Below are positions 15,646 through 61,410 of a stretch of DNA of 64,000 nt, piece by piece. Within the stretch, counting starts at the first letter, position 1; the number at the start of each line of letters is the position of its first letter. The stretch is taken from sequence record NC_061448.1. The stretch is one strand, 5' to 3'. Under the pieces are notes generated by a model. That model was given only the letters and a program-made list of their open reading frames with translations. It made no database searches and was not told the origin of the DNA. The position numbers and the translations under genes were made by a program.

Positions 15646-15657
15646 TATTGAGGAATA
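15646..15657 (+). promoter_or_regulatory. SD-in-loop hairpin TATT-GAGG-AATA
   Basis: 4-bp stem around the SSB RBS. Confidence 0.45.
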
Positions 15658-15660
15658 ACA

Positions 15661-16923
15661 ATGGCACGTGGATTTGGTGACATTCAAGATAACAGCAAAC
15701 GCGATAGTTTGCGTGAATCGGAAATCTTTGAAATCTTCCCTCTTTCGAAGAAAGCAAACGGCAACTGGGTTTCAATTCGTCTGCTGAATCTTGACCTGCT
15801 TCCTATCAAGAAGCACTGGATCAAGATCATGGGCGGGAAAGATAAAGACAAAGAGATCAAAATCCCGCGCATGTGCGTTAGCTTCGACCCGGATAATCAG
15901 AACAAACCTCTGAACGGGATGAAGTGTCCGTACTGTGGCATCGCTCACGGTAACGACGAATCTGGTGCACCGGCGCAGTACGACTATAAGTGGTATGCGC
16001 AAGCGATCATTCGTGACGAGCAAGCTGCTGCGCCGCGTAAAATGCCGAAGCTCACTAAGAATGAGCAGAAGACCGGCAAGAAAGAAATGGGCAGTGAGTC
16101 TTGGACTCCTGTGCAGTGTATTCCGCTGTCGAACTCTCTGGCTGGCAAAATCAAAGAGCTGGGTGAACGTAACATTCACACGGTGAAAGATAAGAAGTCC
16201 GGCAAGAAGTCAAAGCAAGCGTTTCAGGTTAACGATCCGAAGTACGGGTGTGATATTGAAATCAAATACAACCCGAAGAAATCTCCGGCAGAGCGTTACA
16301 CCATCGAGCGTGGCGATCACACTCCACTGACCGAAGAAGAAAAAGGTTATCTGACCTGGGACTTCGACAACTGGAACGAAATCTACGACATGCTGGGTCG
16401 TCTGGACGAAGCTGCTGCTCTGGCTGACTTCAAGAAAATGGACGTTATCGGCGTTAACACCAACGATGATGGTGATGACGATGAAGATGACGATGACGAT
16501 ATGGCGCTGGGCCGCAAGAAGAAAGGCGGCAAGGCAGACAAGAAAAAACGTCGTAGCGATGATGACGACGACGAGGACGATGATGACGATGACGAAGATG
16601 ATCGTCCTTCGAAGTCCAAGAAGTCGAAAGCGTCCAAGTCTCGTAAGCTGTTAGACGATGACGAAGATGATGACGACGACGAAGACGATGAAGATGATCG
16701 TCCGTCGAAGAAAAAGAAATCTTCGAAGGATAAAAAGTCCTCGAAGGTGAAGTCGAAGAAGTCTAAGAAGTCGGACGATGATGACGACGACGAAGACGAA
16801 AAGCCTAAGAAGAAGAAAAAGTCTTCTGACAAGGTGAAATCATCCGACAAGAAGAAGAAAAAGAAATCTTCTGATGACGATGACGACGACGCGCCTAAGA
16901 AGAAAAAGAAAAAGAAAAAGTAA
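15661..16923 (+). CDS. single-stranded DNA-binding protein (gp32-like) with long Asp/Lys tail
   Basis: IRLL...KHWI...C...CPYC core; directly upstream of recA; ~150-aa D/E and K/S block tail. Confidence 0.7.
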   Translation: MARGFGDIQDNSKRDSLRESEIFEIFPLSKKANGNWVSIRLLNLDLLPIKKHWIKIMGGKDKDKEIKIPRMCVSFDPDNQNKPLNGMKCPYCGIAHGNDESGAPAQYDYKWYAQAIIRDEQAAAPRKMPKLTKNEQKTGKKEMGSESWTPVQCIPLSNSLAGKIKELGERNIHTVKDKKSGKKSKQAFQVNDPKYGCDIEIKYNPKKSPAERYTIERGDHTPLTEEEKGYLTWDFDNWNEIYDMLGRLDEAAALADFKKMDVIGVNTNDDGDDDEDDDDDMALGRKKKGGKADKKKRRSDDDDDEDDDDDDEDDRPSKSKKSKASKSRKLLDDDEDDDDDEDDEDDRPSKKKKSSKDKKSSKVKSKKSKKSDDDDDDEDEKPKKKKKSSDKVKSSDKKKKKKSSDDDDDDAPKKKKKKKK

Positions 16924-16931
16924 TCGTTAAC

Positions 16932-16960
16932 GGGGTAGCTTAGGCTGCCCCTTCTTTTCT
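16932..16960 (+). terminator. intrinsic terminator
   Basis: GGGGTAGC-TTAG-GCTGCCCC + TTCTTTTCT. Confidence 0.7.
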
Positions 16961-16979
16961 CAATCTGGACTATCCAACA

Positions 16980-19508
16980 ATGGCGAAAACGAACAACAAG
17001 GCTGAGAAGAAAGCTGAGAAGAAAGCTAAAGTCAAAGCCTCGAAGTCGAAAGACAAAGCAGTCGCAGCCGATGATATTGGCGGCGTGGAAGTATTAGGCT
17101 TTGACCTCGGCAGTATGATGGACGATGTGCTTGACGGCATCGAAAAGAAAACGAAAGTAAGTTCTGCTGATGCAGCACGACACGCCCCGCGTATCTCTAC
17201 TGGTGTGCTTGCGCTCGACATGTACCTCGACGGCGGTATCGTACCTGGCGGTTGGTATACGTTCAGCGGCGGTGAGCAGTCGTGTAAGTCAACAATGACC
17301 ATGAGTATTATGGCGAGCCTGATTCGCATGAAATACTCTGGCATTAGCGTAGTGTTCGACTACGAAGGTTCGACTGATGCTGAATACGTTGCTGGCCAGC
17401 TCAAAACGTTTGGCGTTAAAGTCGATCCGAAAACAATCTTCGGTGTACGTGACGAAGACGGCTCGTGGATCATCAAGCCGCGTATTCGTTACTACGCACC
17501 AGACAACGGTGAGCGCTTCTTCGATTACATGTCGATGCTGCGTCGTCGTCTGCCTGACAAGATCGTTGAGAAAGACGGCTCCTCGTATTACCTCTTTGAG
17601 AACAACAAAGAGAACGCGAAGAAGCTGGCCGGTAAGTACGACAAGAAGTGGTTCAGTCGTAACAACCAGTTCAAAGTTCCTGCTGCTGATGGCCACATGC
17701 AAGCGGCTGTTATCGTTGACTCCTATCCGGCAATGCTGCCTGATCAGGTAGATGACGATGACGGTTCAAAAGCAATGGCGCTGCAAGCGCGTATGTTCTC
17801 TGACGGCATCAAACGTTTCCGTGGTGGTATGCGTCGTAAGATGATGACCATCGTTGGCGTTAACCAGTTGCGTCAGAAGCCTGCTGTTATGTTCGGTAGC
17901 CCTGAGTATGAGCCGGGTGGTGATGCGTTGAAGTTCTACTGCTTCGACCGTGACACTCTGATTCGTACCGACCACGGCGTGCTGACTGCACCGCAGATCA
18001 AAGAGCTGATGGAAGCTGGCACCGAAGTTCGTGTTGAATCGTTCGACGGTTATCAGAAGATTCAGGGTGCGTGGAAAGTCGAAGACGCTCCGTTCCCAAT
18101 CGAAATGAATGCTGGTGGTCACACGTACATCGGCAGCGCAGAGCACCGTCAGTTCACGTTCATGTACGACTGGACAGCAGAAGGTATGATGGTTCTGCGT
18201 CCTGAGTGGAACACACTCGACCAGCTTGCTAAGTGGCCTGATAAGAAAGGTCAGTATGCAGGTCTGCGTATACCGCCAGTGAAAGAACTGAAACAGAACG
18301 TGCCTGACGCGTTCGACGATGCGAGCCAGCTTGTTCGTAATCTTCTCGGTAACTGCGATCCTGTTAGCGTTCAACTGCCTCTGGCTGTTCACGGTGATGT
18401 TACCTACGCTGCGAACGTACTGACCATTGACACGGTTGGTGAAAGCACTGACGTTGATGACTTCTCGTTCTGGGCTAAGAAGCTGCTGGACATTGGTGTG
18501 TTTGCTTACGCTGATGAAAACGGTCTGCACATTCCCGGCCTGAACAAATACGAACTGACGCAAGCCGTAGAGCAATACGCTGAGGGCGAGTTCGTTGGTC
18601 TGTCATTCGATGCCACCAGCCGTCAACGTCAAACGCAGATGTTGACTGTTATCGCTGATGTGTTCCCTGAACTGACTCGTTATGTTCTGGACTATCAGTT
18701 GCAGACAGGTGATGATAAAGTCTATCTGGCGCCTGAGCATGACTTCGCACAAGCTCTCGACCTGATTCTGCATAAGCAGATTGAAGGTTACGATGACATG
18801 TATGACCTGCTGATGACTCAGCTTGCCTACGTTGAAGACTGGTTCAACTTCGACAACTCGATTCTGCCTGTGCCGTTCACGTTGAAAGCGCTCGACAAGC
18901 CTGTTGAGTTCTGGGACGTGAACGTTGACGAAACCTCTGTGGTAATCACTAACGGCTTCGTATCGCATAACAGTGACGTGCGTGTTCGTCTGGCTTCTCG
19001 TGCAGTGCCTGAGGGTTGGCCGAAACTCAAAGACGCGCCGGGCGTTGTCGGTGAGAAGTCTGTTACTGTCGAAGGTGGTACTGACCGCTATCGTTTCATC
19101 GCTGCTAAGACCATCAAGAACAAGATGGGTGGCATCCCGAACCAGAGCACTTGGTTGCGTCTGTGGGAAGCTGACGGTAATGGTGAAGCGCGTGGCTTCG
19201 ACCCAGTGTTCGATACGTGGCACTACCTGAAAGTTCTCGGCCTGATCAACGGCACACGTAAGAACTTCAAGATCAAAGCGCCTTGCCCTCTGGCTTCCGA
19301 AGTCAAGATGGACTGGGATGACTTCCGTACTCTTATCAACGGCAGCAAAGAACAAGTTGTCGGCGTGTGTAAGAAACTGAAAGTCAAACCTGCTGGTCTG
19401 CGTCTGTGGTGCTTCAAGTTCGTGCAGTCTGCGAAAGGCAAAGAAATGTTGAAAGCGTCTATCAGTAAGTCTGCGAAGTCTTCTGATGATGACGGTGACG
19501 ACGATTAA
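16980..19508 (+). CDS. recA: RecA/UvsX recombinase precursor with intein
   Basis: ISTGVLALD, GGEQSCKST (Walker A), VIVDSYPA, VNQLRQKPAVMFGSPEYEPGGDALKFY. Confidence 0.92.
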   Translation: MAKTNNKAEKKAEKKAKVKASKSKDKAVAADDIGGVEVLGFDLGSMMDDVLDGIEKKTKVSSADAARHAPRISTGVLALDMYLDGGIVPGGWYTFSGGEQSCKSTMTMSIMASLIRMKYSGISVVFDYEGSTDAEYVAGQLKTFGVKVDPKTIFGVRDEDGSWIIKPRIRYYAPDNGERFFDYMSMLRRRLPDKIVEKDGSSYYLFENNKENAKKLAGKYDKKWFSRNNQFKVPAADGHMQAAVIVDSYPAMLPDQVDDDDGSKAMALQARMFSDGIKRFRGGMRRKMMTIVGVNQLRQKPAVMFGSPEYEPGGDALKFYCFDRDTLIRTDHGVLTAPQIKELMEAGTEVRVESFDGYQKIQGAWKVEDAPFPIEMNAGGHTYIGSAEHRQFTFMYDWTAEGMMVLRPEWNTLDQLAKWPDKKGQYAGLRIPPVKELKQNVPDAFDDASQLVRNLLGNCDPVSVQLPLAVHGDVTYAANVLTIDTVGESTDVDDFSFWAKKLLDIGVFAYADENGLHIPGLNKYELTQAVEQYAEGEFVGLSFDATSRQRQTQMLTVIADVFPELTRYVLDYQLQTGDDKVYLAPEHDFAQALDLILHKQIEGYDDMYDLLMTQLAYVEDWFNFDNSILPVPFTLKALDKPVEFWDVNVDETSVVITNGFVSHNSDVRVRLASRAVPEGWPKLKDAPGVVGEKSVTVEGGTDRYRFIAAKTIKNKMGGIPNQSTWLRLWEADGNGEARGFDPVFDTWHYLKVLGLINGTRKNFKIKAPCPLASEVKMDWDDFRTLINGSKEQVVGVCKKLKVKPAGLRLWCFKFVQSAKGKEMLKASISKSAKSSDDDGDDD
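17940..18971 (+). mobile_element. intein, 344 aa, probably with a degenerate LAGLIDADG domain
   Basis: Begins CFDRDTLI after ALKFY; block B-like SAEHR; ends WDVNV...NGFVSHN followed by Ser. Confidence 0.9.
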
Positions 19509-19515
19509 TAAATTC

Positions 19516-19539
19516 GGGAGGGCTTCGGCTCTCCCTTTT
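19516..19539 (+). terminator. intrinsic terminator
   Basis: GGGAGGGC-TTCG-GCTCTCCC-TTTT. Confidence 0.85.
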
Positions 19540-19557
19540 CCCGTGTAAGGAGAACCA

Positions 19558-19980
19558 ATGCGTACTCAAATCTTTACTGCTGATATTGTCAATCTCGAAA
19601 CCGTAACTGTCAACGAAGAAGACGGTTCAGAGATTCGTACACCGACAATCGTGCCTAACGTTGAAGGCGAAATGACTGTTGGTGTTAACGAGCTGGTGGG
19701 TCTGTCGAATGGCATTACCGAGCATCCTGACTCTGACTGCCGCCTGATCGTTATCGTGTCGCCTGATGCAACGCCTGTGTTCTACGACGATGCACTGGCG
19801 AACTACTTCGATCCAATCGAGCGCGTAGCTGATATTGAAGCTGGCAACATCGGTAGCATTGTCGGTATGCAGGTCATTCGTGGTCTGCAAGCAGAACATC
19901 CTTACGTTGCAGTTGTCGAAGTGCGTGACGCTGATACCGTAGAGATTCTGCGTTACAACGCGTCTGTAGTGAAACTGTAA
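19558..19980 (+). CDS. hypothetical acidic protein
   Basis: AAGGAG RBS. Confidence 0.75.
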   Translation: MRTQIFTADIVNLETVTVNEEDGSEIRTPTIVPNVEGEMTVGVNELVGLSNGITEHPDSDCRLIVIVSPDATPVFYDDALANYFDPIERVADIEAGNIGSIVGMQVIRGLQAEHPYVAVVEVRDADTVEILRYNASVVKL

Positions 19981-19986
19981 ATATCA

Positions 19987-20007
19987 AGTGGGAGGCATAC
20001 TCCCACT
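19987..20007 (+). terminator. hairpin, possible terminator
   Basis: AGTGGGAG-GCATA-CTCCCACT; poor U-tract. Confidence 0.45.
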
Positions 20008-20018
20008 ATCTCTCGCTT

Positions 20019-20069
20019 GATAGGCAATGCGCCACAAGCAAACAACCTAACTCGATAGGCAATGCGCCA
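20019..20069 (+). repeat. 16-bp direct repeat GATAGGCAATGCGCCA x2
   Basis: Copies at 20019-20034 and 20054-20069. Confidence 0.85.
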
Positions 20070-20079
20070 GGAGTGATTT

Positions 20080-20781
20080 ATGAAAAAGATTCAGACCAAC
20101 TTTATACCGACCGAAGCACTGCATGGTCTTATTCACGGTTACGCTCGTCAGGCTAAACTGCCAGATGCTGCGAGCAAGACGTTGTTCTACGTTGACGTCA
20201 CCGAACGTGGTGCTAACGATGCACTGTACTCTATTCTTCGCCGTGAGATTCCATCAAACATCGTCGGTACTGCATACGATTCCATTGTTAGTTTCCGTGG
20301 ACACACAGCACCTGCCCAACTTCCTATCGTGCTGTCTGAAAGTTTATTCCACATAAGTTTAGAGAGACTCTCTAGTTCTCTGGCTGGCATCTTTGATGCT
20401 CTTGGTCGCACCGTGCATACGAACGACACGCAGATCACTATCTATGGTGAACCTGCGATTGAGAAACTTCTGGCGGTTGTCCGAGACACTCAGTTTAAGA
20501 GCTTCTTGGACGTATGTAATCCGGAACTCGCCTGTGGTGACTTCGACCTACAGTCTAATATCACTGTAGACAACTTTGTGTCTATGGCAATCGACCCTGA
20601 CTTTGAAAAGCGCATTCAGGAAATGCCTGCAACAACGTACACGTTTGGCCGTGACTTCATGTTCATGCACTATGAAGACCTGCACAAAGTCATCCAGATG
20701 CTACGTAGATATAAAAAGAATTGTACGCTGCATCCAGACTTAATGCGCTATTACTTCATGAACGTAATCTGTAAATACTGA
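20080..20781 (+). CDS. hypothetical protein
   Basis: AGGAG RBS. Confidence 0.75.
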   Translation: MKKIQTNFIPTEALHGLIHGYARQAKLPDAASKTLFYVDVTERGANDALYSILRREIPSNIVGTAYDSIVSFRGHTAPAQLPIVLSESLFHISLERLSSSLAGIFDALGRTVHTNDTQITIYGEPAIEKLLAVVRDTQFKSFLDVCNPELACGDFDLQSNITVDNFVSMAIDPDFEKRIQEMPATTYTFGRDFMFMHYEDLHKVIQMLRRYKKNCTLHPDLMRYYFMNVICKY

Positions 20782-20828
20782 TCAACAACCGAACACATTG
20801 CTGTGTGTAGTCTTTGCCTATTTGGGCA

Positions 20829-20861
20829 GGGGAGAGCCGGATGGCCTCCCCATTTTTTTTT
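20829..20861 (+). terminator. intrinsic terminator
   Basis: GGGGAGAGCC-GGAT-GGCCTCCCC followed by A and a T-run. Confidence 0.8.
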
Positions 20862-20884
20862 GTCTGCACCAGTAGGAGATCAGT

Positions 20885-23024: not shown

Positions 23025-23028
23025 CGAT

Positions 23029-24869: not shown

Positions 24870-24923
24870 GCAAATAACTGGACAAAATAGCTCTTTATAT
24901 ACACACGCGACCTATGATACAAT
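24870..24923 (+). promoter_or_regulatory. early promoter P1: TGGACA box + extended -10
   Basis: GCAAATAACTGGACA, 33 bp, TGaTACAAT. Confidence 0.8.
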
Positions 24924-24976
24924 ATATGCAGACGCTGCATGTCGTAGCGCATACAACTACTGCCAAGGGGCATACA

Positions 24977-30349: not shown

Positions 30350-30395
30350 CTGGACAAAATAGCTCTTTCATTCAGTAGTCGACCTATGATATAAT
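30342..30395 (+). promoter_or_regulatory. early promoter P3
   Basis: GCAAATAACTGGACA, 33 bp, TGaTATAAT. Confidence 0.85.
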
Positions 30396-30423
30396 AAACG
30401 TGAGCGCAGTGCTCATACAACAC

Positions 30424-30437
30424 AAGCTGAGGAGCTT
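30424..30437 (+). promoter_or_regulatory. SD-in-loop hairpin AAGCT-GAGG-AGCTT
   Basis: Perfect 5-bp stem. Confidence 0.7.
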
Positions 30438-30440
30438 ACT

Positions 30441-30899
30441 ATGACTACTTATAACATCTCTGATCTCAAAACCCCAGAATCTTTCGTAAACGCGCAGTTC
30501 GGCCATCTGGAAGATCTTCTCGAAAAACTGCGTAACGCTCTGGGTCGTGATGACCTGTCATTGCAGTTAGATGCGGACGGGGAAAACATTCAGGACGTTA
30601 ACACTTCCCCCGACGCTCTTGTGGGAAAAAGCCTGATTCAAATTCTCGTCACACTTCACGGGTCAGACGTAGATGAAGACGACGATGGTGGTCAGGCAGT
30701 TTCTTCTCGTGATGCTTGGTACGCTGCCTTGGGTTTCCCTCACGTAGAAAATGAATGGGGCGAGTGGACGAACTCATTCACGATGTGGGTAGAAGCAGCC
30801 GACGGGGATATGCTTGAAGAAATCTCCGTAGAGAATGGAAACCCAAAAATGATTGAACAACTAGTAGAGCGTATCAACTACTGGTTCCCTGCTGTTTAA
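30441..30899 (+). CDS. acidic early protein
   Basis: First gene after P3. Confidence 0.8.
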   Translation: MTTYNISDLKTPESFVNAQFGHLEDLLEKLRNALGRDDLSLQLDADGENIQDVNTSPDALVGKSLIQILVTLHGSDVDEDDDGGQAVSSRDAWYAALGFPHVENEWGEWTNSFTMWVEAADGDMLEEISVENGNPKMIEQLVERINYWFPAV

Positions 30900-30901: not shown

Positions 30902-30965
30902 GATTTGTGTAGAGCATTCGCTGAGTGCTCTATGAAAATCCAAACAACCTAAGCTGAGGAGCTTA
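30902..30965 (+). promoter_or_regulatory. intergenic long hairpin + AAACAACC + SD-in-loop hairpin TAAGCT-GAGG-AGCTTA
   Basis: Homologous to 31286-31348 with covarying stems. Confidence 0.7.
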
Positions 30966-31285: not shown

Positions 31286-31348
31286 GATTTGTGAAGGGCA
31301 TTTGCGAGTGCCCTTTGAAAATCAAACAACCCTGTTCTGAGGAGAACA
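31286..31348 (+). promoter_or_regulatory. intergenic long hairpin + AAACAACC + SD-in-loop hairpin TGTTCT-GAGG-AGAACA
   Basis: Same architecture as 30902-30965. Confidence 0.7.
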
Positions 31349-31350: not shown

Positions 31351-31707
31351 ATGACTTCTACTGAGATGCCTCGTGATGCCCGTGCTTTTGATGATCTTGA
31401 TGCTAACGGGTTTTTACGTATTACTAATTGCCTGGGTATCATGCTGTCTCGTGGCGACTTGGAGCTTCTGACCAATATCAGTGATCGCACTGTCACTGTT
31501 AAGTATCGCACAGGCGCAGTGAACAAATTCGGACACGGCCACGTTGTTCTGCGTTTCCCGTCAGAAGTTCTTCAATCGGATATTCTCGAAGACTTCGAAG
31601 TGACCGTCGATAAAGATATTGTGATTCTTATCGAACGCCAGTACAGTTCAGCCGCAACGTTCCAGCGCATTGCTGGTGTGATTGAAGGTCTGATGTACAA
31701 ACTGTGA
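31351..31707 (+). CDS. hypothetical protein
   Basis: GAGGAG RBS before ATG 31351. Confidence 0.75.
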   Translation: MTSTEMPRDARAFDDLDANGFLRITNCLGIMLSRGDLELLTNISDRTVTVKYRTGAVNKFGHGHVVLRFPSEVLQSDILEDFEVTVDKDIVILIERQYSSAATFQRIAGVIEGLMYKL

Positions 31708-31769
31708 TTGTTGCTCGCAGGTTCTTACGAGAGCCTGCTGTCAACATAACCCATAAGCTGAGGAGCTTA
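31708..31769 (+). promoter_or_regulatory. intergenic hairpin + SD-in-loop hairpin TAAGCT-GAGG-AGCTTA
   Basis: TGTTG/CAACA and GCAGG/CCTGC stems; third module of the series. Confidence 0.6.
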
Positions 31770-35038: not shown

Positions 35039-35241
35039 ATAGAAAAATGATCGCTTGGCTTTCGCTGGTGGTCTTCTGCGTGGTGGGAGTCGTTACTTCC
35101 ACCGTAGCATTGAATGACTATAACCTGCTATTGAGCTTGATACTAACAGTCGTGTTTGGTGCCGGGCTTATCATCTGTATGCGTTGTCTTGAAAGAGCAA
35201 CGTGGGACTACTGCGTTAAGAAGGGGAAGAAGAATGGCTAA
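35035..35241 (+). CDS. small two-TM membrane protein
   Basis: Two hydrophobic helices and a basic C-terminus. Confidence 0.65.
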   Translation: MNRKMIAWLSLVVFCVVGVVTSTVALNDYNLLLSLILTVVFGAGLIICMRCLERATWDYCVKKGKKNG

Positions 35242-35767
35242 GTCACTTGGCGTTTATCTGACGTATGTTCTGCGTCACAAGCCGCAAGACATTGGCATCG
35301 CTATGGACACTCAGGGCTGGGTATCTGTGCATGACCTGCTTGAGAAAGCACGATACAACAAACCGGTCACGATGCAAATGCTGATCGAAGAAGTAGCGAA
35401 CGACGACAAGGGGCGCTTCGAGTTCAACGCAAGCAAGACCCGCATTCGCTGTGTTCAAGGACATTCGTGTGAGCACGTCATTCTCAATCTCGAACCGTGG
35501 ACAGACTGGAGTCCGTTGTATCACGGTACCGCTGAGAAGAACATCGCATCGATCATGCAAGACGGCATCCTGAAACGCAAACGCAAGCACGTCCATATCA
35601 GCAACGATATTGAAACTGCGAAGCGTGTGGGTCAACGTCATGGTGTGCCTGTTGTGTTTCAGATTGATACGCTGTCCATGATTACTCATGGTTATAAATT
35701 TTACCGCGCAGAGAATGGCGTCATTCTTACCGAGTATGTACCGTCGCGCTATATTCGACTGGTGTGA
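35234..35767 (+). CDS. kptA: RNA 2'-phosphotransferase (Tpt1/KptA)
   Basis: LTYVLRH, GWV, KGRFE, IRCVQGHS, LYHGT, RKHVHIS, RHG, NGVILT motifs. Confidence 0.95.
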   Translation: MAKSLGVYLTYVLRHKPQDIGIAMDTQGWVSVHDLLEKARYNKPVTMQMLIEEVANDDKGRFEFNASKTRIRCVQGHSCEHVILNLEPWTDWSPLYHGTAEKNIASIMQDGILKRKRKHVHISNDIETAKRVGQRHGVPVVFQIDTLSMITHGYKFYRAENGVILTEYVPSRYIRLV

Positions 35768-36189: not shown

Positions 36190-36225
36190 AGAGATGAACG
36201 CTAGACACTCGTTTAGCTACTTACA

Positions 36226-36248
36226 TGAGGATATGTACATGAAAAAGA
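36226..36248 (+). repeat. 23-bp RBS/start repeat TGAGGATATGTACATGAAAAAGA, copy 1 (copy 2 at 36573-36595)
   Basis: Perfect direct repeat. Confidence 0.85.
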
Positions 36249-36559: not shown

Positions 36560-36585
36560 CCTGAACTTCGCCTGAGGATATGTAC

Positions 36586-37989
36586 ATGAAAAAGATTAAA
36601 CACACTTTCCGACTGACCGACCTTGTTCGTATTGCCGATGTTCTGCCTGTCACTATGAAACACTTTAGTGGTGCTGGCGAAGAAGCAATTGTTGTTGAAC
36701 GTAATGATACCTCTGATGAATATGGGTTGCACATCAAACATCATGGTTACGTTTCGTGGTACCCTGCTGAAAGCCTGACGCTTATCAAACACAACCAGAG
36801 CGAATTGCTTGACAAGTGGGAAGCTGGTAAGTACGGCAAGAAGAAAAAGAAAGAGCGCAAGATCCCCGATGAACTGCGCAACTTCACCGCTATCTTGCCT
36901 GTGACTTGCAACGCTGATTGCTCTTTCTGTCCTGAGAAAGAGATGGAGAACAAGGCGCCGCAGAAAGAGTGGCAAGACAAACTGATTGCTGCGATTAAGA
37001 CACACGGCCATCGTGTCGATCACGTATCAATCTCCGGCGGTGAACCTACGCTGCGTATGAAGTACCTGTTCGAAACGATCGACCAGATTAAGACAAAAGC
37101 GCATATGCGCAAAGTGGGTCTGACTTCGAACGGTCAGTTCCTTGAGAAGCCGAATCAGTTGCTGACGTTTCTCGATCTGAACACGGACGAGATGTTGGAA
37201 AGCAAACTGTCGCATCTGAATATCAGTATGCACTCGTTTGACCGCGAGAAAGCAAACAAGATCATGGGCGTCAACTATACGTGGACTCTCGAAGACCTTG
37301 CTCGCTTCCGTCGTCAGTTAGGCCGCAAACTGAGTTTCCACATCAACTTCGTTATCAACGAACAGAACATTGATAACATCGAGTGGGAGTTCCGTCAGGC
37401 CAACGAGTTCATGAAAGAGAACCAGTGGATTGACGTTGTATTCCGTGTTGACTACGACAACAAGAAACTGAACAAAGAACTGCGTAAGTATGGTCTGGCT
37501 GTACAGGCTGCGCGTGAAGCAAAACGTCCACGCGATAAGAGCATCAAGTACACGCCTCCGAAAGTTAAAGAGCCTAAGCTGATCAAGCTGTTTAACTCTA
37601 TCTTCGACGGTAGCTTCTACGACGAACTGACCGAAGAGACTATGCCTGGCTTTGGTGATACGTTCACAACCGCGTGTCCGTCGTGCTTCACTCACCGCAG
37701 CACTGACTTAGGTAACAGCTTCGCATATCTGAAAGCGTCTTCATACGAACCGAACGAAGACGAAGAAGAATACACTGAGATGGTATTCCACATGGACGGT
37801 GGTCTGTACTTCGATTGGTCGCGCAAAGAGCCTGTGCCAGAAGTGAAAGCGAAGAAAGCTAAACCTCTGCCTCGTTTGAAGAAAGCGAAGAAGGCTGAAC
37901 CGAAAGGTTATCCTGATAGCTGCAACTATTCTTCTCCGTGCAGTTACTCGCGTGGCTCGTCTTGCAGTTTTGGCAGCGGTATGTGCTAA
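36586..37989 (+). CDS. radical SAM protein with extra N-terminal domain and Cys-rich tail
   Basis: CNADCSFC (CxxxCxxC), ISGGEPTL, TSNG, LNISMH. Confidence 0.9.
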   Translation: MKKIKHTFRLTDLVRIADVLPVTMKHFSGAGEEAIVVERNDTSDEYGLHIKHHGYVSWYPAESLTLIKHNQSELLDKWEAGKYGKKKKKERKIPDELRNFTAILPVTCNADCSFCPEKEMENKAPQKEWQDKLIAAIKTHGHRVDHVSISGGEPTLRMKYLFETIDQIKTKAHMRKVGLTSNGQFLEKPNQLLTFLDLNTDEMLESKLSHLNISMHSFDREKANKIMGVNYTWTLEDLARFRRQLGRKLSFHINFVINEQNIDNIEWEFRQANEFMKENQWIDVVFRVDYDNKKLNKELRKYGLAVQAAREAKRPRDKSIKYTPPKVKEPKLIKLFNSIFDGSFYDELTEETMPGFGDTFTTACPSCFTHRSTDLGNSFAYLKASSYEPNEDEEEYTEMVFHMDGGLYFDWSRKEPVPEVKAKKAKPLPRLKKAKKAEPKGYPDSCNYSSPCSYSRGSSCSFGSGMC

Positions 37990-46313: not shown

Positions 46314-46618
46314 TGAAAGGTAAAAAGTTAGACGTATTCCTGCAACAACGCACTGCAATAAACAAAGTCGCCTCAAGTCCACAAGACTGGGAGACTTATA
46401 AAGAAATGCTGTTGAACATACGGCTTGCAGTTGCAGTTGACCCGCGCCCTGATGCTGCTGTGCGACACTTAGCACGTACTTGGCACGCCGAAAAGAAATA
46501 TGCGCTCCCTGTCTGTCAGGCTACGCTTCTGAAACTGATGACGTTGAAGAAAGCGAACCAAACGCTTGAAGAAATGATCGCGCTTTACATTGACCTTGAG
46601 GAAGGACCGAAGAAATGA
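46313..46618 (+). CDS. hypothetical protein
   Basis: TGATG coupling. Confidence 0.7.
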   Translation: MKGKKLDVFLQQRTAINKVASSPQDWETYKEMLLNIRLAVAVDPRPDAAVRHLARTWHAEKKYALPVCQATLLKLMTLKKANQTLEEMIALYIDLEEGPKK

Positions 46619-55511: not shown

Positions 55512-55946
55512 ATGAAACTCGAACAAAACATTCTGGTAGTAAATCGTGTTGCTTTGGTAATGAAAGACGCGCTGGTTAAGAAGCTGACTGAGGCGGCTAA
55601 CACTGATCGCTCGGCTACGGCTTTATCTCTGGCTTACACCACCGCAATCGTTATGGCTAAACTCCAGCACAAGGTGACATTCGCTCTTGCTGAGGAAAAC
55701 CCAGAGGCCTGCGTCCGCGCTGAACTCTTGTGGACTGATCACGGCTCGCTGTCAACAAGCGCGTTGTTCATCATCGCATCTGCCGCCGACGAAGAAGTGT
55801 TGAACCACGTCGAAGACCACGACTACCTGAACCATCTGCACACAATCAAACGTGTCGCCGAAGAGAACGGGTTCACTCTGTCAGTCTTCCCTGTGGCAGC
55901 TAACTTCCCGTTCAAGCATACTGAAATCCCGGCTGATATGCAGTGA
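55512..55946 (+). CDS. hypothetical protein
   Basis: AGGGA RBS. Confidence 0.75.
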   Translation: MKLEQNILVVNRVALVMKDALVKKLTEAANTDRSATALSLAYTTAIVMAKLQHKVTFALAEENPEACVRAELLWTDHGSLSTSALFIIASAADEEVLNHVEDHDYLNHLHTIKRVAEENGFTLSVFPVAANFPFKHTEIPADMQ

Positions 55947-55954
55947 GGTGATCT

Positions 55955-56254
55955 ATGACTGAGAAACAACAATTAGTACCGAATGTTGCTATCGTCCTGA
56001 CGATGAACGAACGTCGCTCTTTCATGGGCCCGAAAGAAGATGGGTTCGTCTATCTGGCAAACAAAGAAGCGTTGCAGAAATTCGAAGCACACATCTTGCG
56101 CCACCGCAGCCGTGAAGAATACTCTGAGATAGAGCACCGCGAGTTACACGCTCTGAGCGCTGAGGGCGTCTTAGCTCTAAGTCACGAAGTCGAGACAGAT
56201 CCAGACAGACCATGGCTGTGGACAAAGACAGACTTTCGCATTAAGCTCTGGTAA
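55955..56254 (+). CDS. hypothetical protein
   Basis: GAGGTG RBS. Confidence 0.75.
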   Translation: MTEKQQLVPNVAIVLTMNERRSFMGPKEDGFVYLANKEALQKFEAHILRHRSREEYSEIEHRELHALSAEGVLALSHEVETDPDRPWLWTKTDFRIKLW

Positions 56255-56308
56255 GCATAAAACTGGACAAAATGAGGCTAGTATTTGAGGGTCTCATTGT
56301 GTTATACT
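56255..56308 (+). promoter_or_regulatory. early promoter P8
   Basis: GCATAAAACTGGACA, 33 bp, TGtTATACT. Confidence 0.85.
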
Positions 56309-56342
56309 AAAAGCGTAGCTTGTGCTGCGCTTTTTTCACTTA

Positions 56343-56356
56343 TGTCTGAGGAGACA
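56343..56356 (+). promoter_or_regulatory. SD-in-loop hairpin TGTCT-GAGG-AGACA
   Basis: Perfect 5-bp stem. Confidence 0.7.
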
Positions 56357-56361
56357 ACAAA

Positions 56362-56826
56362 ATGCTGAACGAAACGAAAGCGACCGTATCTGATATTGAA
56401 TTGCAGGACCGTATGATGGACGCTGCTGTCCAGAAAGTTATCGAACTGAAACCTGAATGGATCGACGTTTGTGCTGCTGGTCTTCGCTTGTACCTGACCG
56501 TGTGTGACCAGCTCGGCGGTCCGATTCCTGAAATGCGTTTCGTTCACAACAACAAGCCGTGCAAACTCTCTTTCAACCTGAAAGAAGCTACTGAGGGTAG
56601 TGAGTTCGTTGCGAACGATATTGACCACGAAAAGCAGATGGAAACTTGCGAAGCGATTCTTGCTACAGCCGAAGCGAATGAAGAAGGTCATTCGCTGATG
56701 GATTTAGCGATTTGTTCTGGTCGCCTGTTCATGATCGGCTATGACGGACTTGCGGGTACTATCGGCAAAGTGTGTTTCCGCTTCGCCAAGAAGAACTACA
56801 CAATGAATCTGGTTGAGGGTGAATAA
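56362..56826 (+). CDS. acidic hypothetical protein
   Basis: First gene after P8. Confidence 0.8.
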   Translation: MLNETKATVSDIELQDRMMDAAVQKVIELKPEWIDVCAAGLRLYLTVCDQLGGPIPEMRFVHNNKPCKLSFNLKEATEGSEFVANDIDHEKQMETCEAILATAEANEEGHSLMDLAICSGRLFMIGYDGLAGTIGKVCFRFAKKNYTMNLVEGE

Positions 56827-56827
56827 C

Positions 56828-57517
56828 ATGAAACCGTACACTCTGCTTAAACGTAGCAAACTAAATCCCGATGTGTTTGCTCTTGTGCGAGACAACGAAG
56901 TGCTGGTATCTTTCAAGCCAAGCAAGTTCTATGCGGCGCTTAATACCGTTGTTAAAGAGCACGGCCTGAAAGAAGTCGATGTAGTGTGGCGTGACGGCAC
57001 TCGCACTGTCGAACACCTTGTCGTTCACCACACACGTAGATTGGTATCGGTTGATACTATCATGAACTACTACAACGTGTGTCTGATGCTTCGTGCTCAA
57101 GGCGCGGCTGTGAGTCTGGCTACACCTGTCGATATTCGTGCTATGTTTGACGCGAATGGTCCGCTGATTAGCGAGATCCACATTGACCCAGAACTCGCTG
57201 AAAAGCTAGTGGTGGCACTCACACCCAAACATCCTATGTTCGCAGATGCGCATAGCTCACATGAAGAAGATGATGATATGTTCGATGATGATGACCTCGA
57301 TCCTGATGACGATTTTGAGGATGAGGATGATCTCTGCGATGATGACTTCACCCCAGAAGAGGATCGTCTGAGTCTTATCGCTTGGGGCTACCGCGCCGAA
57401 GACTGGTCAACTACTTTGACCGACGATGCCGTGCAGGAAGTACACAGCCTTGAAGTTGGCATTGACCATGACATTGAACTGCCACTCGCACCTGATGCGA
57501 AGGACAAATACTTCTAA
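56828..57517 (+). CDS. hypothetical protein with acidic C-terminal third
   Basis: GAGG RBS before ATG 56828. Confidence 0.75.
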   Translation: MKPYTLLKRSKLNPDVFALVRDNEVLVSFKPSKFYAALNTVVKEHGLKEVDVVWRDGTRTVEHLVVHHTRRLVSVDTIMNYYNVCLMLRAQGAAVSLATPVDIRAMFDANGPLISEIHIDPELAEKLVVALTPKHPMFADAHSSHEEDDDMFDDDDLDPDDDFEDEDDLCDDDFTPEEDRLSLIAWGYRAEDWSTTLTDDAVQEVHSLEVGIDHDIELPLAPDAKDKYF

Positions 57518-57708
57518 TGAAAACCACAAACGAAATGATCAAAGAGTTGCGACAACGCGGCGAGCTTGTTATTGAAGAACGCCAGAAAGACGTAGTGCCC
57601 GACTTAACGTTCACGCTTGATTGTCTGTGTCTCACGTACAAGAAGCGGGAAGTGGAAACGACCAAGCGAGGCCGCGTTATCACAATCAAGTTGACGAACA
57701 TGCACTAA
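57517..57708 (+). CDS. small hypothetical protein
   Basis: TAATG coupling. Confidence 0.65.
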   Translation: MKTTNEMIKELRQRGELVIEERQKDVVPDLTFTLDCLCLTYKKREVETTKRGRVITIKLTNMH

Positions 57709-57719
57709 CAATCCAGTTT

Positions 57720-57792
57720 GGCTCGCCCGTCCAGAAATGCTCACCCCCAATGAGGCGCCCCTCGCAGAGGCGTGACGACGCGGGTCCTTTTT
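57720..57792 (+). ncRNA. candidate structured RNA or branched terminator
   Basis: Closing stem GGCTCGC..CGTC/GACG..GCGGGTCC, two internal hairpins, TTTTT tail. Confidence 0.35.
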
Positions 57793-57833
57793 AGAACGTA
57801 CTGGTTAGTGCGTTGCATAAAGAACCCAAAACA

Positions 57834-57847
57834 AACAGGAGGCTGTT
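57834..57847 (+). promoter_or_regulatory. SD-in-loop hairpin AACAG-GAGG-CTGTT
   Basis: Perfect 5-bp stem. Confidence 0.7.
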
Positions 57848-58192
57848 ATGAAGTTTAACGATGTAAGTAAAGATGCTCAGGTAATTCTTATGGGCGGCGC
57901 ACTTGCCGGAGTTGTTGAAGTCTTCGGACGTGACGACGAAGACGAGGGTAAGCAGTTGATTGAAACTGCGCTGCGCCAAGTCGGTCTGACGTTCGACGAG
58001 TTCCGCACTATGATGACTGAAATGCCGCCAGAAGTTGAAGCGGAAGTTGCGTCTGTTCAGACAGTAGCTGCGGACCCTGACGATGACTTCGACGACCAGC
58101 AGCTGGACACGATGGAAGAACGTCCCGGCAATCTCGACGAAGACGGGCGTACTGATGAAAACGGCTGGCAAACACTTGAAGACGAACAATAG
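57848..58192 (+). CDS. highly acidic small protein
   Basis: AGGAGG RBS; D/E-rich. Confidence 0.8.
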   Translation: MKFNDVSKDAQVILMGGALAGVVEVFGRDDEDEGKQLIETALRQVGLTFDEFRTMMTEMPPEVEAEVASVQTVAADPDDDFDDQQLDTMEERPGNLDEDGRTDENGWQTLEDEQ

Positions 58193-58228
58193 CAGACGCC
58201 GACACGCATAGCAGATAGTCGCATCTAA

Positions 58229-58282
58229 GCAAAAAACTGGACAAAATGAGGGTTGTATCAGAATAGCGTCCTGAGCTATACT
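58229..58282 (+). promoter_or_regulatory. early promoter P9
   Basis: GCAAAAAACTGGACA, 33 bp, TATACT. Confidence 0.8.
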
Positions 58283-58288
58283 ATATAG

Positions 58289-58373
58289 ACAGCGAGACAA
58301 CGTTCTCTCTGCTAAATGCCTTGTAACTGCTTGACCGTGTGTTTTTCGTTTTCCCGGGCACACGGTCCTTTTT
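58289..58373 (+). ncRNA. candidate ~85-nt small RNA or attenuated leader
   Basis: Between P9 and terminator GACCGTGTG/CACACGGTC-CTTTTT; no RBS-ORF. Confidence 0.4.
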
Positions 58374-58486
58374 AAAGTCGCTTCGCTGAGGCTGCTTTAA
58401 AAAGGGTTCGATACCCTTTGAGCGCTTTCGGATTTACGCGGTTTTCACCGACTGTGCTCTCATGTTAAACCGCAAAGGAAATAAAT

Positions 58487-59125
58487 ATGCCAAATCCAAA
58501 AGTAGTTGCCAAACTTGCTGAACGTGCTAAACGTACTCCGCGCGGTCCTTCGTCTGTTAAACCTAAAGCTGCGAAAGAGCGTCACGATAAAGAGTCGATG
58601 ACAACACCAGAGCACAAGAAAAACTTGCCGCCTGTTGTTGCTGCGCCTAAGATGCGTGATGACGAGCGTGTGTACTTTCTTGTACACGCAATCTTATCCT
58701 CATGGAAATTGAGCGCTGTTACGACTGATGCGAATGCGGCTGCTACCGGCATTATCAAAGTGTCACGCCGTAAGATTGAAGGTGCCCTGCGTGACCTCAA
58801 GAATACGCGCTTCACTAAAATCCCGTCGCTCATTAGCGATATTCTGACCGATATGGATCTCTGCAAAGAGTTCGGGCAGTGGGTATACGTCGAACATGAT
58901 TCGCCTGATTGGATTTTCGTTCGACTGCCTGAGAACAGCACACAAGTTATTCGTGCTGACATTAGCTCTGACCGCACGGGTCAAACGTCTGCGGCTGTGA
59001 CGACCTCTGTTGAAGTGCTGCTGGACGATGCGTACCTCGAAGACGAGGAAGACGAGATTCCTGAGAACGTCGAATATGACGACGAAGATGAATCTCACGT
59101 TAACGAAGAAGAGGAGGAAGAATAA
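58487..59125 (+). CDS. protein with basic N-terminus and acidic C-terminus
   Basis: AAGGA RBS. Confidence 0.8.
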   Translation: MPNPKVVAKLAERAKRTPRGPSSVKPKAAKERHDKESMTTPEHKKNLPPVVAAPKMRDDERVYFLVHAILSSWKLSAVTTDANAAATGIIKVSRRKIEGALRDLKNTRFTKIPSLISDILTDMDLCKEFGQWVYVEHDSPDWIFVRLPENSTQVIRADISSDRTGQTSAAVTTSVEVLLDDAYLEDEEDEIPENVEYDDEDESHVNEEEEEE

Positions 59126-59574
59126 TGACCTCTTCAATTCGTCCGGCATCCGAAACAGCCGCAATGATCATTGAAAACGTCACTCTCTATTCTCAAGAGA
59201 AGGGACACGACCATACGCTGCCGCGCTTTAAAATGCCCGACACTGCGATACGTCGAATCTCTGGTCATGCTCGCGTTCTGCCTGAAAGTTATATCGAACA
59301 GGTATCTATCGAGCTACAACAACTCGACTGGATGATGATGCGATACAATGCAGGCGAGTTCCTCTTTCTGCACTTTGATATACCGAAGAACTGGACGCGA
59401 TTGAGCGCGAAGCGTGTTGTGCCAAACGACGACCCTAGCGCTGAGTACGATACGTGGACGTTGCCTGAGCTACAGGGCTTCGCTCAACGTAACGACTTCT
59501 TACAGCCCGACGAAGAGGGGTTTCACGATAGAGCGTCATTGATTCGCGCTATCATGCGAGGCGAGACTCACTAA
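59125..59574 (+). CDS. hypothetical protein with C-terminal Rho-N/HeH-like motif
   Basis: YDTWTLPELQGFAQRND...DRASLIRAI. Confidence 0.75.
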   Translation: MTSSIRPASETAAMIIENVTLYSQEKGHDHTLPRFKMPDTAIRRISGHARVLPESYIEQVSIELQQLDWMMMRYNAGEFLFLHFDIPKNWTRLSAKRVVPNDDPSAEYDTWTLPELQGFAQRNDFLQPDEEGFHDRASLIRAIMRGETH

Positions 59575-59584
59575 GCAATAACGA

Positions 59585-59609
59585 GCGGGGCAGTATATAG
59601 CTGCCCTGC
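59585..59609 (+). terminator. hairpin, possible terminator
   Basis: GCGGGGCAG-TATATAG-CTGCCCTGC; poor U-tract. Confidence 0.5.
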
Positions 59610-59623
59610 TATCTGCGAAGTAT

Positions 59624-59677
59624 GCAGAAAACTGGACAAAATCGTGGTTGCTATCTGAAAGCGACCTATGATATACT
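59624..59677 (+). promoter_or_regulatory. early promoter P10
   Basis: GCAGAAAACTGGACA, 33 bp, TGaTATACT. Confidence 0.85.
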
Positions 59678-59715
59678 AGATGCAGACGCAATAGTGCGTC
59701 GCACACAAAACACAT

Positions 59716-59729
59716 ATACTGAGGAGTAT
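59716..59729 (+). promoter_or_regulatory. SD-in-loop hairpin ATACT-GAGG-AGTAT
   Basis: Perfect 5-bp stem. Confidence 0.7.
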
Positions 59730-59734
59730 TAATC

Positions 59735-61330
59735 ATGGCACGTATCGAAACTAACACTAACCTGGTTGGCAAAACTATCGTCCTGCTGAACGGCACCAAA
59801 ACTAAAATCGAAGATGCAATCGCGTCCGGTTACAAAGTGAAAGGCCAGACGAAACGTATCGCTACCCGTTGCGTTGTGAAAGAGGGTGCGCACTTCCGTG
59901 AAATCGAACGTATGAACCTGAGCCAGCTCGAAGACACCGGCGAAGGTTACGTTAAGCTGAAAGAAGCGAAAGCTGCTGGTAAGAAAGCTACCGGCAAGAA
60001 AGACGCTGTGAAAGAGAAAGCGCCTAAGACTTCTGGTAAGAAGACTGGCGGTAAAGTCTCGAAAGAGAAAGAGCCGAAAGTTCGTCGCAAATCTTCCGAA
60101 GAGCAGTCCGAAGATTATCAGAATCTGGCACACGCTATCATCAAAGGCGGCAAGGCGAAACCTGCTGTTGAGATCGAAGCTGTAGACGAAACGCTGACCG
60201 ACGCTGTTGCTAAACGTCTGGTGGCGCTGCTGGAAAACAGCGAAATTGCGAAAGTGTGTGCTGACAACAAAACGCCGATCGCTAACGCACTGTCAGTTGC
60301 TTACGGTGCTGAGTACGCCGAAGAGAACAACACAATGCAGATCACGCTGAGCCTGCAATACGCAATGCCGGTCAAAGATACTGCTGTCGCACCTGAGCTG
60401 GACGAAGCTGTTGCGAAACGTGCCGCCAAGCTCGCGTCTAAGAAGATTGGCAAAGTGCTGGCGAAAGCAATCAAAGCTGCGTTCGACCTCGAAGATGCGA
60501 ACGACCTGCTGCCGGGTACTGTACTGACCACTGACGGTACTGAGTTCGTGTTTGTGGGTGAATCTGCTAAACACGCTGGCAAAGCGCTGATGTATAGCGC
60601 AGACACTGACGGCTTCAAATCATTCGGCGCTGACAAGCTGTCCGACTTCGAAATCGTCGCTGATGAAAGCGAAGAAGAAGAGGAAGAAGTCGAAGAAGAA
60701 GAAGAGGTCGAGGAAGAAGAAGAGGAAGAAGAAGACGGCGAAGACGACGACAACGTAGAAGATGACGGTGAGCCGCAAGACGCCGAGTACGAGTTCGTTG
60801 CTGTCGAAGCTGATCAACTCGAACTGGTCAACAAGAAAGTGACCGCGAAGTATCACGCTGCACTCGCTGAACGTTTCGGTGTAGACGAAGAAGCGCTCGC
60901 CCCTGGCCTGATGTTGACTGACGGCGAAACAACATTCGCTTATCTGGGCTGCGATAGCAAAGGCGGGCTGCTGGTAATCGACCTGTCTGACGACGCAGAC
61001 GAAGAAGACAACGTTCTGGTATACAGCAAAGCTGATATTAAAACGCTGAACGACTTTAGCCCTGTGATCGATAGCGGTGAAGCTGACGACGCCGAAGAGG
61101 AAGACGGCGAAGAAGAAGATACCGAAGAAGAAAACGACTTCGAAGATGAGGACGGTGAAGAGGAAGAGGACGAAGAAGAAGAAGACTTCGAATTTGACGA
61201 CGCACCGAGCGAAGACCTCGAAGACCTGTCCGAAGACGAGCTGCGTGATCGCGCTGTTGAAGCCGGTCTGACTACGCCGCGCAAAGCAGACAAAATGAAC
61301 GCTGCCCAGCTGCGTAAGCTCCTGAAGTAA
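59735..61330 (+). CDS. large acidic modular protein (paralog of 61415-62827)
   Basis: Shared N-domain, two internal repeats, poly-Glu tracts, C-terminal HeH-like motif. Confidence 0.85.
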   Translation: MARIETNTNLVGKTIVLLNGTKTKIEDAIASGYKVKGQTKRIATRCVVKEGAHFREIERMNLSQLEDTGEGYVKLKEAKAAGKKATGKKDAVKEKAPKTSGKKTGGKVSKEKEPKVRRKSSEEQSEDYQNLAHAIIKGGKAKPAVEIEAVDETLTDAVAKRLVALLENSEIAKVCADNKTPIANALSVAYGAEYAEENNTMQITLSLQYAMPVKDTAVAPELDEAVAKRAAKLASKKIGKVLAKAIKAAFDLEDANDLLPGTVLTTDGTEFVFVGESAKHAGKALMYSADTDGFKSFGADKLSDFEIVADESEEEEEEVEEEEEVEEEEEEEEDGEDDDNVEDDGEPQDAEYEFVAVEADQLELVNKKVTAKYHAALAERFGVDEEALAPGLMLTDGETTFAYLGCDSKGGLLVIDLSDDADEEDNVLVYSKADIKTLNDFSPVIDSGEADDAEEEDGEEEDTEEENDFEDEDGEEEEDEEEEDFEFDDAPSEDLEDLSEDELRDRAVEAGLTTPRKADKMNAAQLRKLLK

Positions 61331-61396
61331 TCTCGTAACACTGTAACACTGAAATAAGATGCGGTTCATACAGAGCCGCATCTCTGACAACTAAGC

Positions 61397-61410
61397 TGAT
61401 TGAGGAATCA
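61397..61410 (+). promoter_or_regulatory. SD-in-loop hairpin TGATT-GAGG-AATCA
   Basis: Perfect 5-bp stem. Confidence 0.7.

Follow-up and report, generated by a model that had tools for sequence, protein, structure and literature searches.

A covarying hairpin displays the Shine-Dalgarno core in the initiation regions of early-region genes of an Alexandravirus jumbo phage

The 64,000 nt stretch considered here, referred to throughout as the window, is identical in sequence to bases 186001-250000 of Erwinia phage pEa_SNUABM_1 (MZ443776.1; 266,939 bp), a jumbo phage of the genus Alexandravirus. It belongs to the PaBG-like group, whose jumbo phages encode their own sigma-70-like factor (PMC7412058). 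All genes in the record are labelled hypothetical; family searches and the annotations of relatives identify the window as an early or DNA-metabolism region, with nameable products that include a single-strand DNA-binding protein, a RecA/UvsX protein, a radical SAM protein and a DksA-type zinc finger, as well as Acb1, an RNA 2′-phosphotransferase, UvdE, a dUTPase and a transglycosylase. The element in question is a small hairpin in which GAGG, the core of the Shine-Dalgarno (SD) sequence, forms the tetraloop, shortly before the start codon. These hairpins are a selected RNA element, present where translation initiates on about ten early-region genes that each head a separate translation unit.

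Nine hairpins of this kind had been listed in a first-pass annotation, and all nine sequences are found at the coordinates claimed on the + strand, with the stem ending 0-5 nt from the annotated ATG in every case, as had been described. Eight of the nine are real hairpin sites. Predicted folds in context (at 37 °C unless stated, as for all site energies and pair probabilities given here) assign these eight stabilities of -1.9 to -5.2 kcal/mol and pair probabilities of 0.68-0.96, with stabilities of -3.2 to -6.8 kcal/mol at 25 °C. Four of them head gp264 to gp267: AAGCT-GAGG-AGCTT (30424..30437) lies 3 nt before the gp264 ATG at 30441 (-3.9 kcal/mol, probability 0.95); TAAGCT-GAGG-AGCTTA occurs 2 nt before the ATG of both gp265 (30950..30965) and gp267 (31754..31769), with the same values of -5.2 kcal/mol and 0.96 at each; and TGTTCT-GAGG-AGAACA (31333..31348) is placed 2 nt before that of gp266 (-5.1 kcal/mol, 0.90). 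Further downstream are TGTCT-GAGG-AGACA (56343..56356), 5 nt before the gp313 ATG (-4.2 kcal/mol, 0.92), and AACAG-GAGG-CTGTT (57834..57847), which abuts that of gp316 (-3.4 kcal/mol, 0.92). The last two precede large genes, with ATACT-GAGG-AGTAT (59716..59729) found 5 nt before the ATG of gp319 (531 aa; -2.1 kcal/mol, 0.68) and TGATT-GAGG-AATCA (61397..61410) 4 nt before that of gp320 (470 aa; -1.9 kcal/mol, 0.96). Two hairpins were absent from the earlier list, these being TGCC-AAGG-GGCA (24961..24972, + strand), 4 nt before the gp252 ATG (-4.1 kcal/mol, 0.92), and TTATCT-GAGG-AGATAA, which is located past the window end at record position 250941 and precedes a 1004-aa gene. The ninth listed sequence, TATT-GAGG-AATA (15646..15657, + strand), stands before gp244, the product of which matches phrog_15004, single-strand DNA-binding protein. 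Here no fold is predicted (0.0 kcal/mol, probability 0.00), and in five relatives the 3′ side reads AACA or AAAT, leaving 2 pairs and no hairpin; it was rejected as a member and is probably a chance palindrome. The statement that the stems always pair therefore holds for eight of the nine, whilst the description of them as mostly different is right in that seven stems are distinct, and overlooks an AAGCT core common to three of the nine.

The sites share an order of parts within the leader or intercistronic spacer, namely a stable G+C-rich hairpin, a linker of 10-20 nt that is predicted to be unpaired, the SD hairpin of 4-7 pairs, 0-5 nt and the AUG. Hairpin genes are preceded by a gap of 64-216 nt (median 91, versus 9 for other genes; p = 4e-5), and the 15 nt preceding the SD hairpins consist of 75% A+C, 8% G and 17% U. 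Directly before the gp264 site, for example, a 5′-terminal hairpin, TGAGCGCAGTGCTCA, is followed by the A+C-rich linker TACAACAC (30401..30423, + strand, folded in context), and equivalent G+C-rich upstream hairpins are present at 24926-24940, 30910-30932, 31294-31315, 31717-31738, 56312-56336, 59685-59700 and 61358-61382. These upstream hairpins themselves covary among relatives; the gp320 upstream stem, GATGCGG...CCGCATC, becomes TGTACGCC...GGCGTACA in SNUABM_28. Those at 30910-30932, 31294-31315, 31717-31738, 59685-59700 and 61358-61382 have no U run and lie 12-20 nt upstream of the SD hairpins. Intergenic G+C-rich hairpins of this type, devoid of a U run, may be processing sites or stabilisers.

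With regard to the SD hairpin itself, the AUG is predicted to be unpaired, whilst the SD flanks are paired at a probability of 0.68-0.96, mostly with C-U in the 5′ arm and A-G in the 3′ arm. The sequence UGAGGAG is able to form seven pairs (one of them G-U) with the 3′ end of 16S rRNA, which we take to carry the enterobacterial anti-SD, and because this pairing extends over seven positions the SD reaches into the stem. At gp316 the SD is AGGAGG, made up of the 5′ arm and the loop, and the loop is still GAGG; the same four residues are thus displayed regardless of which arm completes the SD. As a separate observation, the ten hairpin leaders contain no GGA besides that of the SD between -70 and +40, where 1-2 per 110 nt would be expected, a scarcity that may reflect avoidance of SD-like decoys.

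Some of these leaders begin at a recognisable promoter cassette. The pattern is gCAAATAAC-TGGACAAAAT, about 33 nt and an extended -10 element TGnTATAAT (TGATATAAT or TATACT), with the TGGACA box near -50; the cassette at 30351..30395 (+ strand, sigma-70-type) reads AACTGGACAAAAT, about 33 nt and TGATATAAT as the extended -10. Further cassettes are found on the + strand at 24879, 26374, 44378, 47789, 52817, 56264, 58238 and 59633. Nine are present in the whole 267-kb genome, all on the + strand and all between record positions 210.9 and 245.6 kb. A hairpin ribosome site follows four of them (24879, 30351, 56264 and 59633), for which gp252, gp264, gp313 and gp319, respectively, are the first genes downstream, and at these four the predicted transcript begins at the upstream hairpin. 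The earlier suggestion that several listed hairpins head the first gene after a promoter with a TGGACA box is therefore correct for 30424, 56343 and 59716, and does not extend to the other six of the nine. At 56312-56336, directly after the promoter at 56264-56308, there is a hairpin with six U (AGCGTAGC-TTGT-GCTGCGCT-TTTTTT), a terminator-like element at the extreme 5′ end of the gp313 leader that is conserved, with a weaker U run in some relatives. Elsewhere in the window, the gene at 14575-15612 has an orthologue in Yersinia phage fHe-Yen9-02 whose annotation there is RNA polymerase sigma factor; the window protein itself has no Pfam match.

The number of these hairpins is far above expectation. 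A perfect stem of at least 4 pairs surrounds 11 of the 121 GAGG on the + strand of the window, where about 0.5 would be expected, and 2 of the 123 on the - strand. The 99 annotated + strand genes of the window possess 34 GAGG at ribosome sites, with perfect stems of 4 pairs or longer at 10 of them, and stem lengths are distributed bimodally, with 24 at 0-3 bp (18, three, two and one at 0, 1, 2 and 3 bp, respectively) and 10 at 4-6 bp (two, five and three at 4, 5 and 6 bp). When the 5′ flanks were swapped among sites, stems of this length averaged 0.65 and numbered at most 5, versus the 10 observed, such that the excess over controls on which the first-pass annotation depended is borne out. Over the whole genome GAGG is the commonest tetraloop, accounting for 9 of 287 perfect inverted repeats (at least 5 pairs, 4-nt loop). 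Ribosome sites with such a hairpin are found solely on the + strand, from 201.6 to 251 kb of the record, where they make up 10 of 38 GAGG ribosome sites, compared to 0 of 69 elsewhere in the genome (Fisher p = 1.3e-5). T4 likewise makes frequent use of GAGG; its first 50 kb contain 31 at ribosome-site-like positions, and a stem of at least 3 pairs is present at none of these. Chance or base composition as the source is ruled out by the flank-swap, rest-of-genome and T4 controls. Inflation of the count by paralogous copies was also considered and set aside, as three sites share AAGCT, yet seven distinct stems remain and orthologues covary. Nor is there a general excess of small hairpins at ribosome sites, since stems of at least 4 pairs are found at 36 of the 99 genes and coding controls give 29.7 ± 3.9; the enrichment is specific to loops that hold the SD sequence. 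No Rfam family reaches its gathering score in the 64-kb window, and no description of an SD display element was located in the literature for Alexandravirus or PaBG-like phages.

For comparison between phages, the syntenic 50 kb was taken from ten relatives, five of them Alexandraviruses and the others Y3 (Sasquatchvirus), SNUABM_5 (Rivsvirus), Yoloswag, Yersinia phage fHe-Yen9-02 and JA11 (Salmondvirus), with orthologues assigned by protein similarity and the hairpin not used. Orthologous genes in up to five genera retain the hairpin as their flanks, and often their proteins too, diverge, and orthologous stems display compensatory changes on both sides together with U-G intermediates. At gp264 the stem is ACGCT/AGCGT, a compensatory change, in Alexandra, SNUABM_28 and Y3, where the protein is merely 39-45% identical. 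Orthologues of gp265 have TTAGCT/AGCTAA (SNUABM_5), TAGCT/AGCTA (Yoloswag) or ACGCT/AGCGT (fHe-Yen9-02), and those of gp267 have ATGCT/AGCAT (Y3), GTGCT/AGCAT with a G-U pair (SNUABM_5) or ATGTTCT/AGAACAT (fHe-Yen9-02). The gp266 hairpin is retained even at 48-50% protein identity. In gp313 the outermost pair is U-A in pEa_SNUABM_1, A-U in Y3, C-G in SNUABM_5 and U-G in Yoloswag, giving the stems TGTCT/AGACA, AGTCT/AGACT and CGTCT/AGACG along with the Yoloswag U-G intermediate. The gp252 orthologues include ATGCT-AAGG-GGCAT, with a U-G closing pair, ATGCT-AAGG-AGCAT and TGCC-GAGG-GGCA, so that the closing pair passes between C-G, U-G and U-A. The gp319 hairpin is present in all 11 phages, as ATACT, AATACT, TAATACT, TAATTCT (fHe-Yen9-02) and, in JA11, ATTTCT with a TAGG loop; the JA11 protein is 51.5% identical over the N-terminal 100 residues and 34% over its whole length. 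The gp316 hairpin is invariant in Alexandravirus and Y3 within variable flanks. There are losses as well: the hairpin of gp267 is lost in Alexandra, where the 5′ flank has been replaced, that of gp265 has one C-A mismatch in SNUABM_30, and that of gp320, invariant in Alexandravirus and Y3, is lost outside these, being absent from SNUABM_5, Yoloswag and fHe-Yen9-02.

When 60 distinct sequences from the 11 phages are considered together, the inner five pairs form in 56-59 of the 60, with 4-6 pair types each, and variation is free in the outer three to five. Covariation scores 0.688, compared to 0.158 ± 0.02 with shuffled 3′ partners (0 of 500 reach the observed value), shuffle statistics that overstate significance and are not to be taken as probabilities, given that related phage sequences are not independent. 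Sliding the partners by 1-3 columns, as a control, yields scores of at most 0.163. RNAalifold, run on the gp319 leaders of the 11 phages, independently predicts both the SD hairpin and the upstream hairpin. Stabilities among the sequences range from -1.9 to -6.2 kcal/mol, with the exception of the JA11 gp320 stem of 4 A-U pairs (+2.9 kcal/mol), and longer stems are richer in A-U (rho = -0.53). Covariation in related phages, which the first-pass annotation had proposed to look for, is thus present, and its view that structure is selected over sequence is supported by the compensatory changes in orthologues, by the score of 0.688 against 0.158 and by the agreement of RNAalifold. The hairpin is a conserved, covarying, sense-strand RNA structure under selection; that the selection is on RNA pairing is indicated by the double changes within orthologues, the G-U intermediates on the sense strand and the strand specificity.

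It is this evidence that makes it most improbable that the repeats are simply homology patches of mobile regulatory cassettes, like those termed PeSL in T4-type phages, or DNA palindromes without a function as RNA. There are features that such an origin would account for: a 21-nt ribosome-site sequence is the same at 30950 and 31754, a conserved leader is joined to 39-50% identical proteins (gp264 and gp266) in otherwise close relatives, and the PeSL cassettes provide a precedent (PMC2839356). Recombination, however, predicts neither compensatory changes nor U-G intermediates on the sense strand alone, and the fixed position of the GAGG loop and the narrow range of stability are likewise not predicted. 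The proteins of gp264 (30441-30899) and gp266 (31351-31707) are 39-50% identical to their positional counterparts, with conserved leaders, in phages whose DNA is otherwise 82-90% identical, which suggests cassette exchange at the regulatory spacers. The resemblance to PeSL cassettes (PMC2839356, PMC4122927) is close in several respects, as both contain a repeated upstream box, a sigma-70-type promoter, a stem-loop, an SD and an ATG, followed by small early genes of unassigned function that are swapped between relatives. Correspondingly, the nine cassettes in the phage have a conserved upstream box, an extended -10, a 5′ hairpin and variable early genes. The PeSL stem-loop is, however, a G+C-rich terminator near the promoter and not an SD hairpin, and an SD tetraloop is not described for PeSL.

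Structure at a ribosome site is usually seen as an obstacle, whereas here a weak, precisely placed stem has been retained over deep divergence, which suggests that it is of benefit to initiation, to timing or to the survival of the mRNA. The likeliest reading, to which we give about an even chance, is that the hairpin serves early genes as a cis-acting structured ribosome site provided with a standby linker. The 30S subunit would land on the A+C-rich linker, as it does on a standby site; the anti-SD would nucleate on the exposed GAGG and then open the weak stem, which in the meantime could insulate the SD from pairing elsewhere and hide its U-rich flanks from RNases. The outcome would be strong, context-independent initiation on portable early-gene cassettes, and the leader, being compact and modular, could be of use as a portable expression part. 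Unstructured CA-rich 5′ tails are known to boost translation from a structured ribosome site via standby (PMC5934652), and the two parts of that arrangement are both found in the phage, in that the ribosome site sits in a local stem-loop and an unstructured single-stranded segment adjoins it. By the same likeness, output would be expected to track the stability of the stem. There are differences too, since the stems in the published system have about -10 to -11 kcal/mol and those of the phage, at -2 to -6 kcal/mol, are much weaker; in addition, the phage places the SD core in the loop and the AUG outside the stem, and does so in about ten genes and with conservation across genera.

The composition of the leaders also bears on a role in mRNA protection, in which the upstream G+C hairpin and the U-poor linker, together with the SD hairpin, would turn the untranslated spacer into a poor substrate for RNase E and so stabilise early transcripts or their processed ends. 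Almost all U of the ribosome-site region is within stems, the linker has the low U and G contents given above, a stable hairpin lies at the predicted 5′ end of promoter-proximal leaders, and synthetic leader hairpins raise transcript abundance (PMC12743556). As the main role this is nevertheless unlikely, for it leaves unexplained why the loop is the SD core in exact register, and stems of -2 to -5 kcal/mol offer little shielding. Protection is, moreover, compatible with the structured ribosome site rather than exclusive of it.

Several observations weigh against the structured ribosome site with standby linker as a sufficient account. Initiation should pay some price for any stem on the SD flanks, which means that the benefit has to lie in something else, and we infer the effect of the hairpin on translation or mRNA stability from comparison and predicted structure. 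The distribution is patchy, with hairpins at just 9 of 41 genes that have a long upstream gap and with 5 of the 9 promoter cassettes lacking a hairpin ribosome site, and the shared descent of the sequences tempers the covariation statistics as described. The loop is near-invariant across the 60 sequences: it is GAGG, rarely AAGG or UAGG, with G11 in at least 90% and A12-G13-G14 invariant, and the closing pair is U-A in 51 of 60 and the next pair C-G in 48 of 60. A role purely in cis has no obvious need for near-invariant loop and closing pairs, and a sequence-specific reader could be at work.

If so, the hairpin may be an operator for a phage-encoded RNA-binding repressor or endoribonuclease that shuts off or times the early genes, the target being a GAGG tetraloop on a stem closed by C-G and U-A, in the manner of T4 RegB or RegA or of the gp43 operator. 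We regard this as possible and clearly less probable than the structured ribosome site. Its attraction is that the loop and two closing pairs are near-invariant as the outer stem covaries freely, that sites are restricted to the early, sigma-70-promoter region, and that most window proteins (about 80%) have no known family and so leave room for a reader. The T4 precedent is also apt, as RegB targets and the translational operators of RegA, gp32 and gp43 are likewise early-gene GGAG ribosome sites with one feature common to a set (PMC3014915). T4 RegB cuts GGAG in early SDs, with a consensus of GGAGRAYARAA in which GGA is unpaired, and structure is protective (PMC3014915). The RegB core is found here, as 8 of the 10 sites contain GAGGAG or AGGAGG, every one of them within the early-promoter region. 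The extended consensus is not matched, however, because GGAG is followed by the 3′ stem arm (CTTA, AACA, ACA or TAT); the GGAG is half paired, its A-G being in the stem, and such pairing should protect against a RegB-like enzyme. None of the 31 T4 GAGG sites in 50 kb lies in a hairpin of this type. The invariant CUGAGGAG can, furthermore, be accounted for as well by complementarity to 16S rRNA together with cassette duplication. No RegB, RegA, CsrA or other RNA-binding family was found by Pfam among the 98 + strand window proteins, a weak argument given that about 80% of these have no family. Hints of a nuclease are limited to a PD-(D/E)XK, Cas4-like nuclease (8471-9556) and one weak match to a Csm6-type HEPN domain (PF09670, E = 4.8e-4), the source protein of which, a potential RNase, was not located on re-scanning 18 of the first 49 + strand proteins (2681-35238). 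Should a phage factor indeed read the hairpin, it would form an early-gene control circuit in a phage group whose genes are mostly unassigned. The term regulon, used in the first-pass annotation, goes further than the sites themselves, which may be regulated jointly.

The invariant tip can be viewed more broadly. Tentatively, and with no greater confidence than the operator, the GAGG tetraloop on its C-G/U-A-closed stem may be a dedicated recognition module, either an operator for a phage protein or nuclease or a U-turn that pre-stacks the SD. Loops of the U-turn type with the motif YUNR are reportedly a feature of antisense RNAs (Franch et al. 1999) and also of tRNA anticodon loops. In 51 of 60 sequences C-U-G-A, at the 5′ side of the phage loop, conforms to YUNR, and a U-turn here would stack GAGGA for fast pairing; phage early mRNAs might in this manner capture 30S subunits faster than host mRNAs do. 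The gp316 and TGCC members do not fit YUNR. Either a reader or a U-turn, if real, would be a form of initiation control not described for phages.

Host CsrA/RsmA, named in the first-pass annotation as a potential reader that would bind the hairpins and control translation of these genes, is a very unlikely one, ranking below mRNA protection. The likeness is that of a short hairpin tipped by a purine-rich, SD-overlapping motif; a GGA that overlaps the SD in this position is present at most sites, and proteins of the family are known to bind such hairpins. The CsrA consensus derived by SELEX is A(N)GGA / RUACARGGAUGU. The phage sites do not match A(N)GGA, but read YUGAGGAG, in which G takes the place of the conserved A. 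A shift of one in the register means that at most sites two G occupy the loop and the A of GGA belongs to the closing U-A pair, whilst at gp316 the register differs (last stem G plus loop G-A) and the gp252 site at 24961 lacks GGA altogether. None of the ten leaders contains more than one GGA between -70 and +40, a single site where dimers usually bridge two. The assignment to host CsrA is therefore not sustained, and a search for a phage CsrA homologue by tblastn also found none (best E = 0.25).

An RNA thermometer of the fourU or ROSE type was considered as well and rejected, as GAGG, the SD core, occupies the loop at 25 °C and 37 °C alike. There are earlier descriptions of structured ribosome sites, standby sites, CsrA hairpins, T4 operators and PeSL cassettes; what appears to be undescribed is the combination of an SD tetraloop in fixed register with a weak, covarying stem at about ten early genes in several jumbo-phage genera.

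Two sites in the window, likewise absent from the earlier list, resemble the element without clearly belonging to it. CCTT-GAGG-AAGG (46594..46605, + strand) is ambiguous, as its GAGG is 13 nt before the gp298 ATG and within the coding end of gp297; it has a probability of 0.75 and is conserved without covariation, being broken in Alexandra (CATT). TACATG-AGGA-TATGTA (36222..36237, + strand), with a G-U closing pair and located 1 nt before the gp276 ATG, is a possible member in another register, and is the same in two relatives, hence its conservation is uninformative. The neighbouring genes gp276 and gp277 are headed by the same 15-nt ribosome-site sequence, GAGGATATGTACATG (36227-36241 and 36574-36588), and of these copies that of gp276 alone has the complementary 5′ arm.

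With regard to the proteins encoded downstream, gp319 (59735-61330) and gp320 (61415-62827), both large and headed by the hairpin, have N-termini that cross-match at about 35% identity in tblastn and are probably paralogues. Neither has a Pfam family or a PDB sequence match, and their PHROG families are listed as function not assigned. Amongst the other genes of the window, the product of 13693-14160 matches anti-CBASS Acb1 (PF23474, E = 1.5e-12) and the 2′-5′ RNA ligase / 2H phosphoesterase superfamily, with orthologues annotated as cyclic phosphodiesterase in relatives, and that of 35234-35767 is an RNA 2′-phosphotransferase of the Tpt1/KptA family (E = 3e-45).

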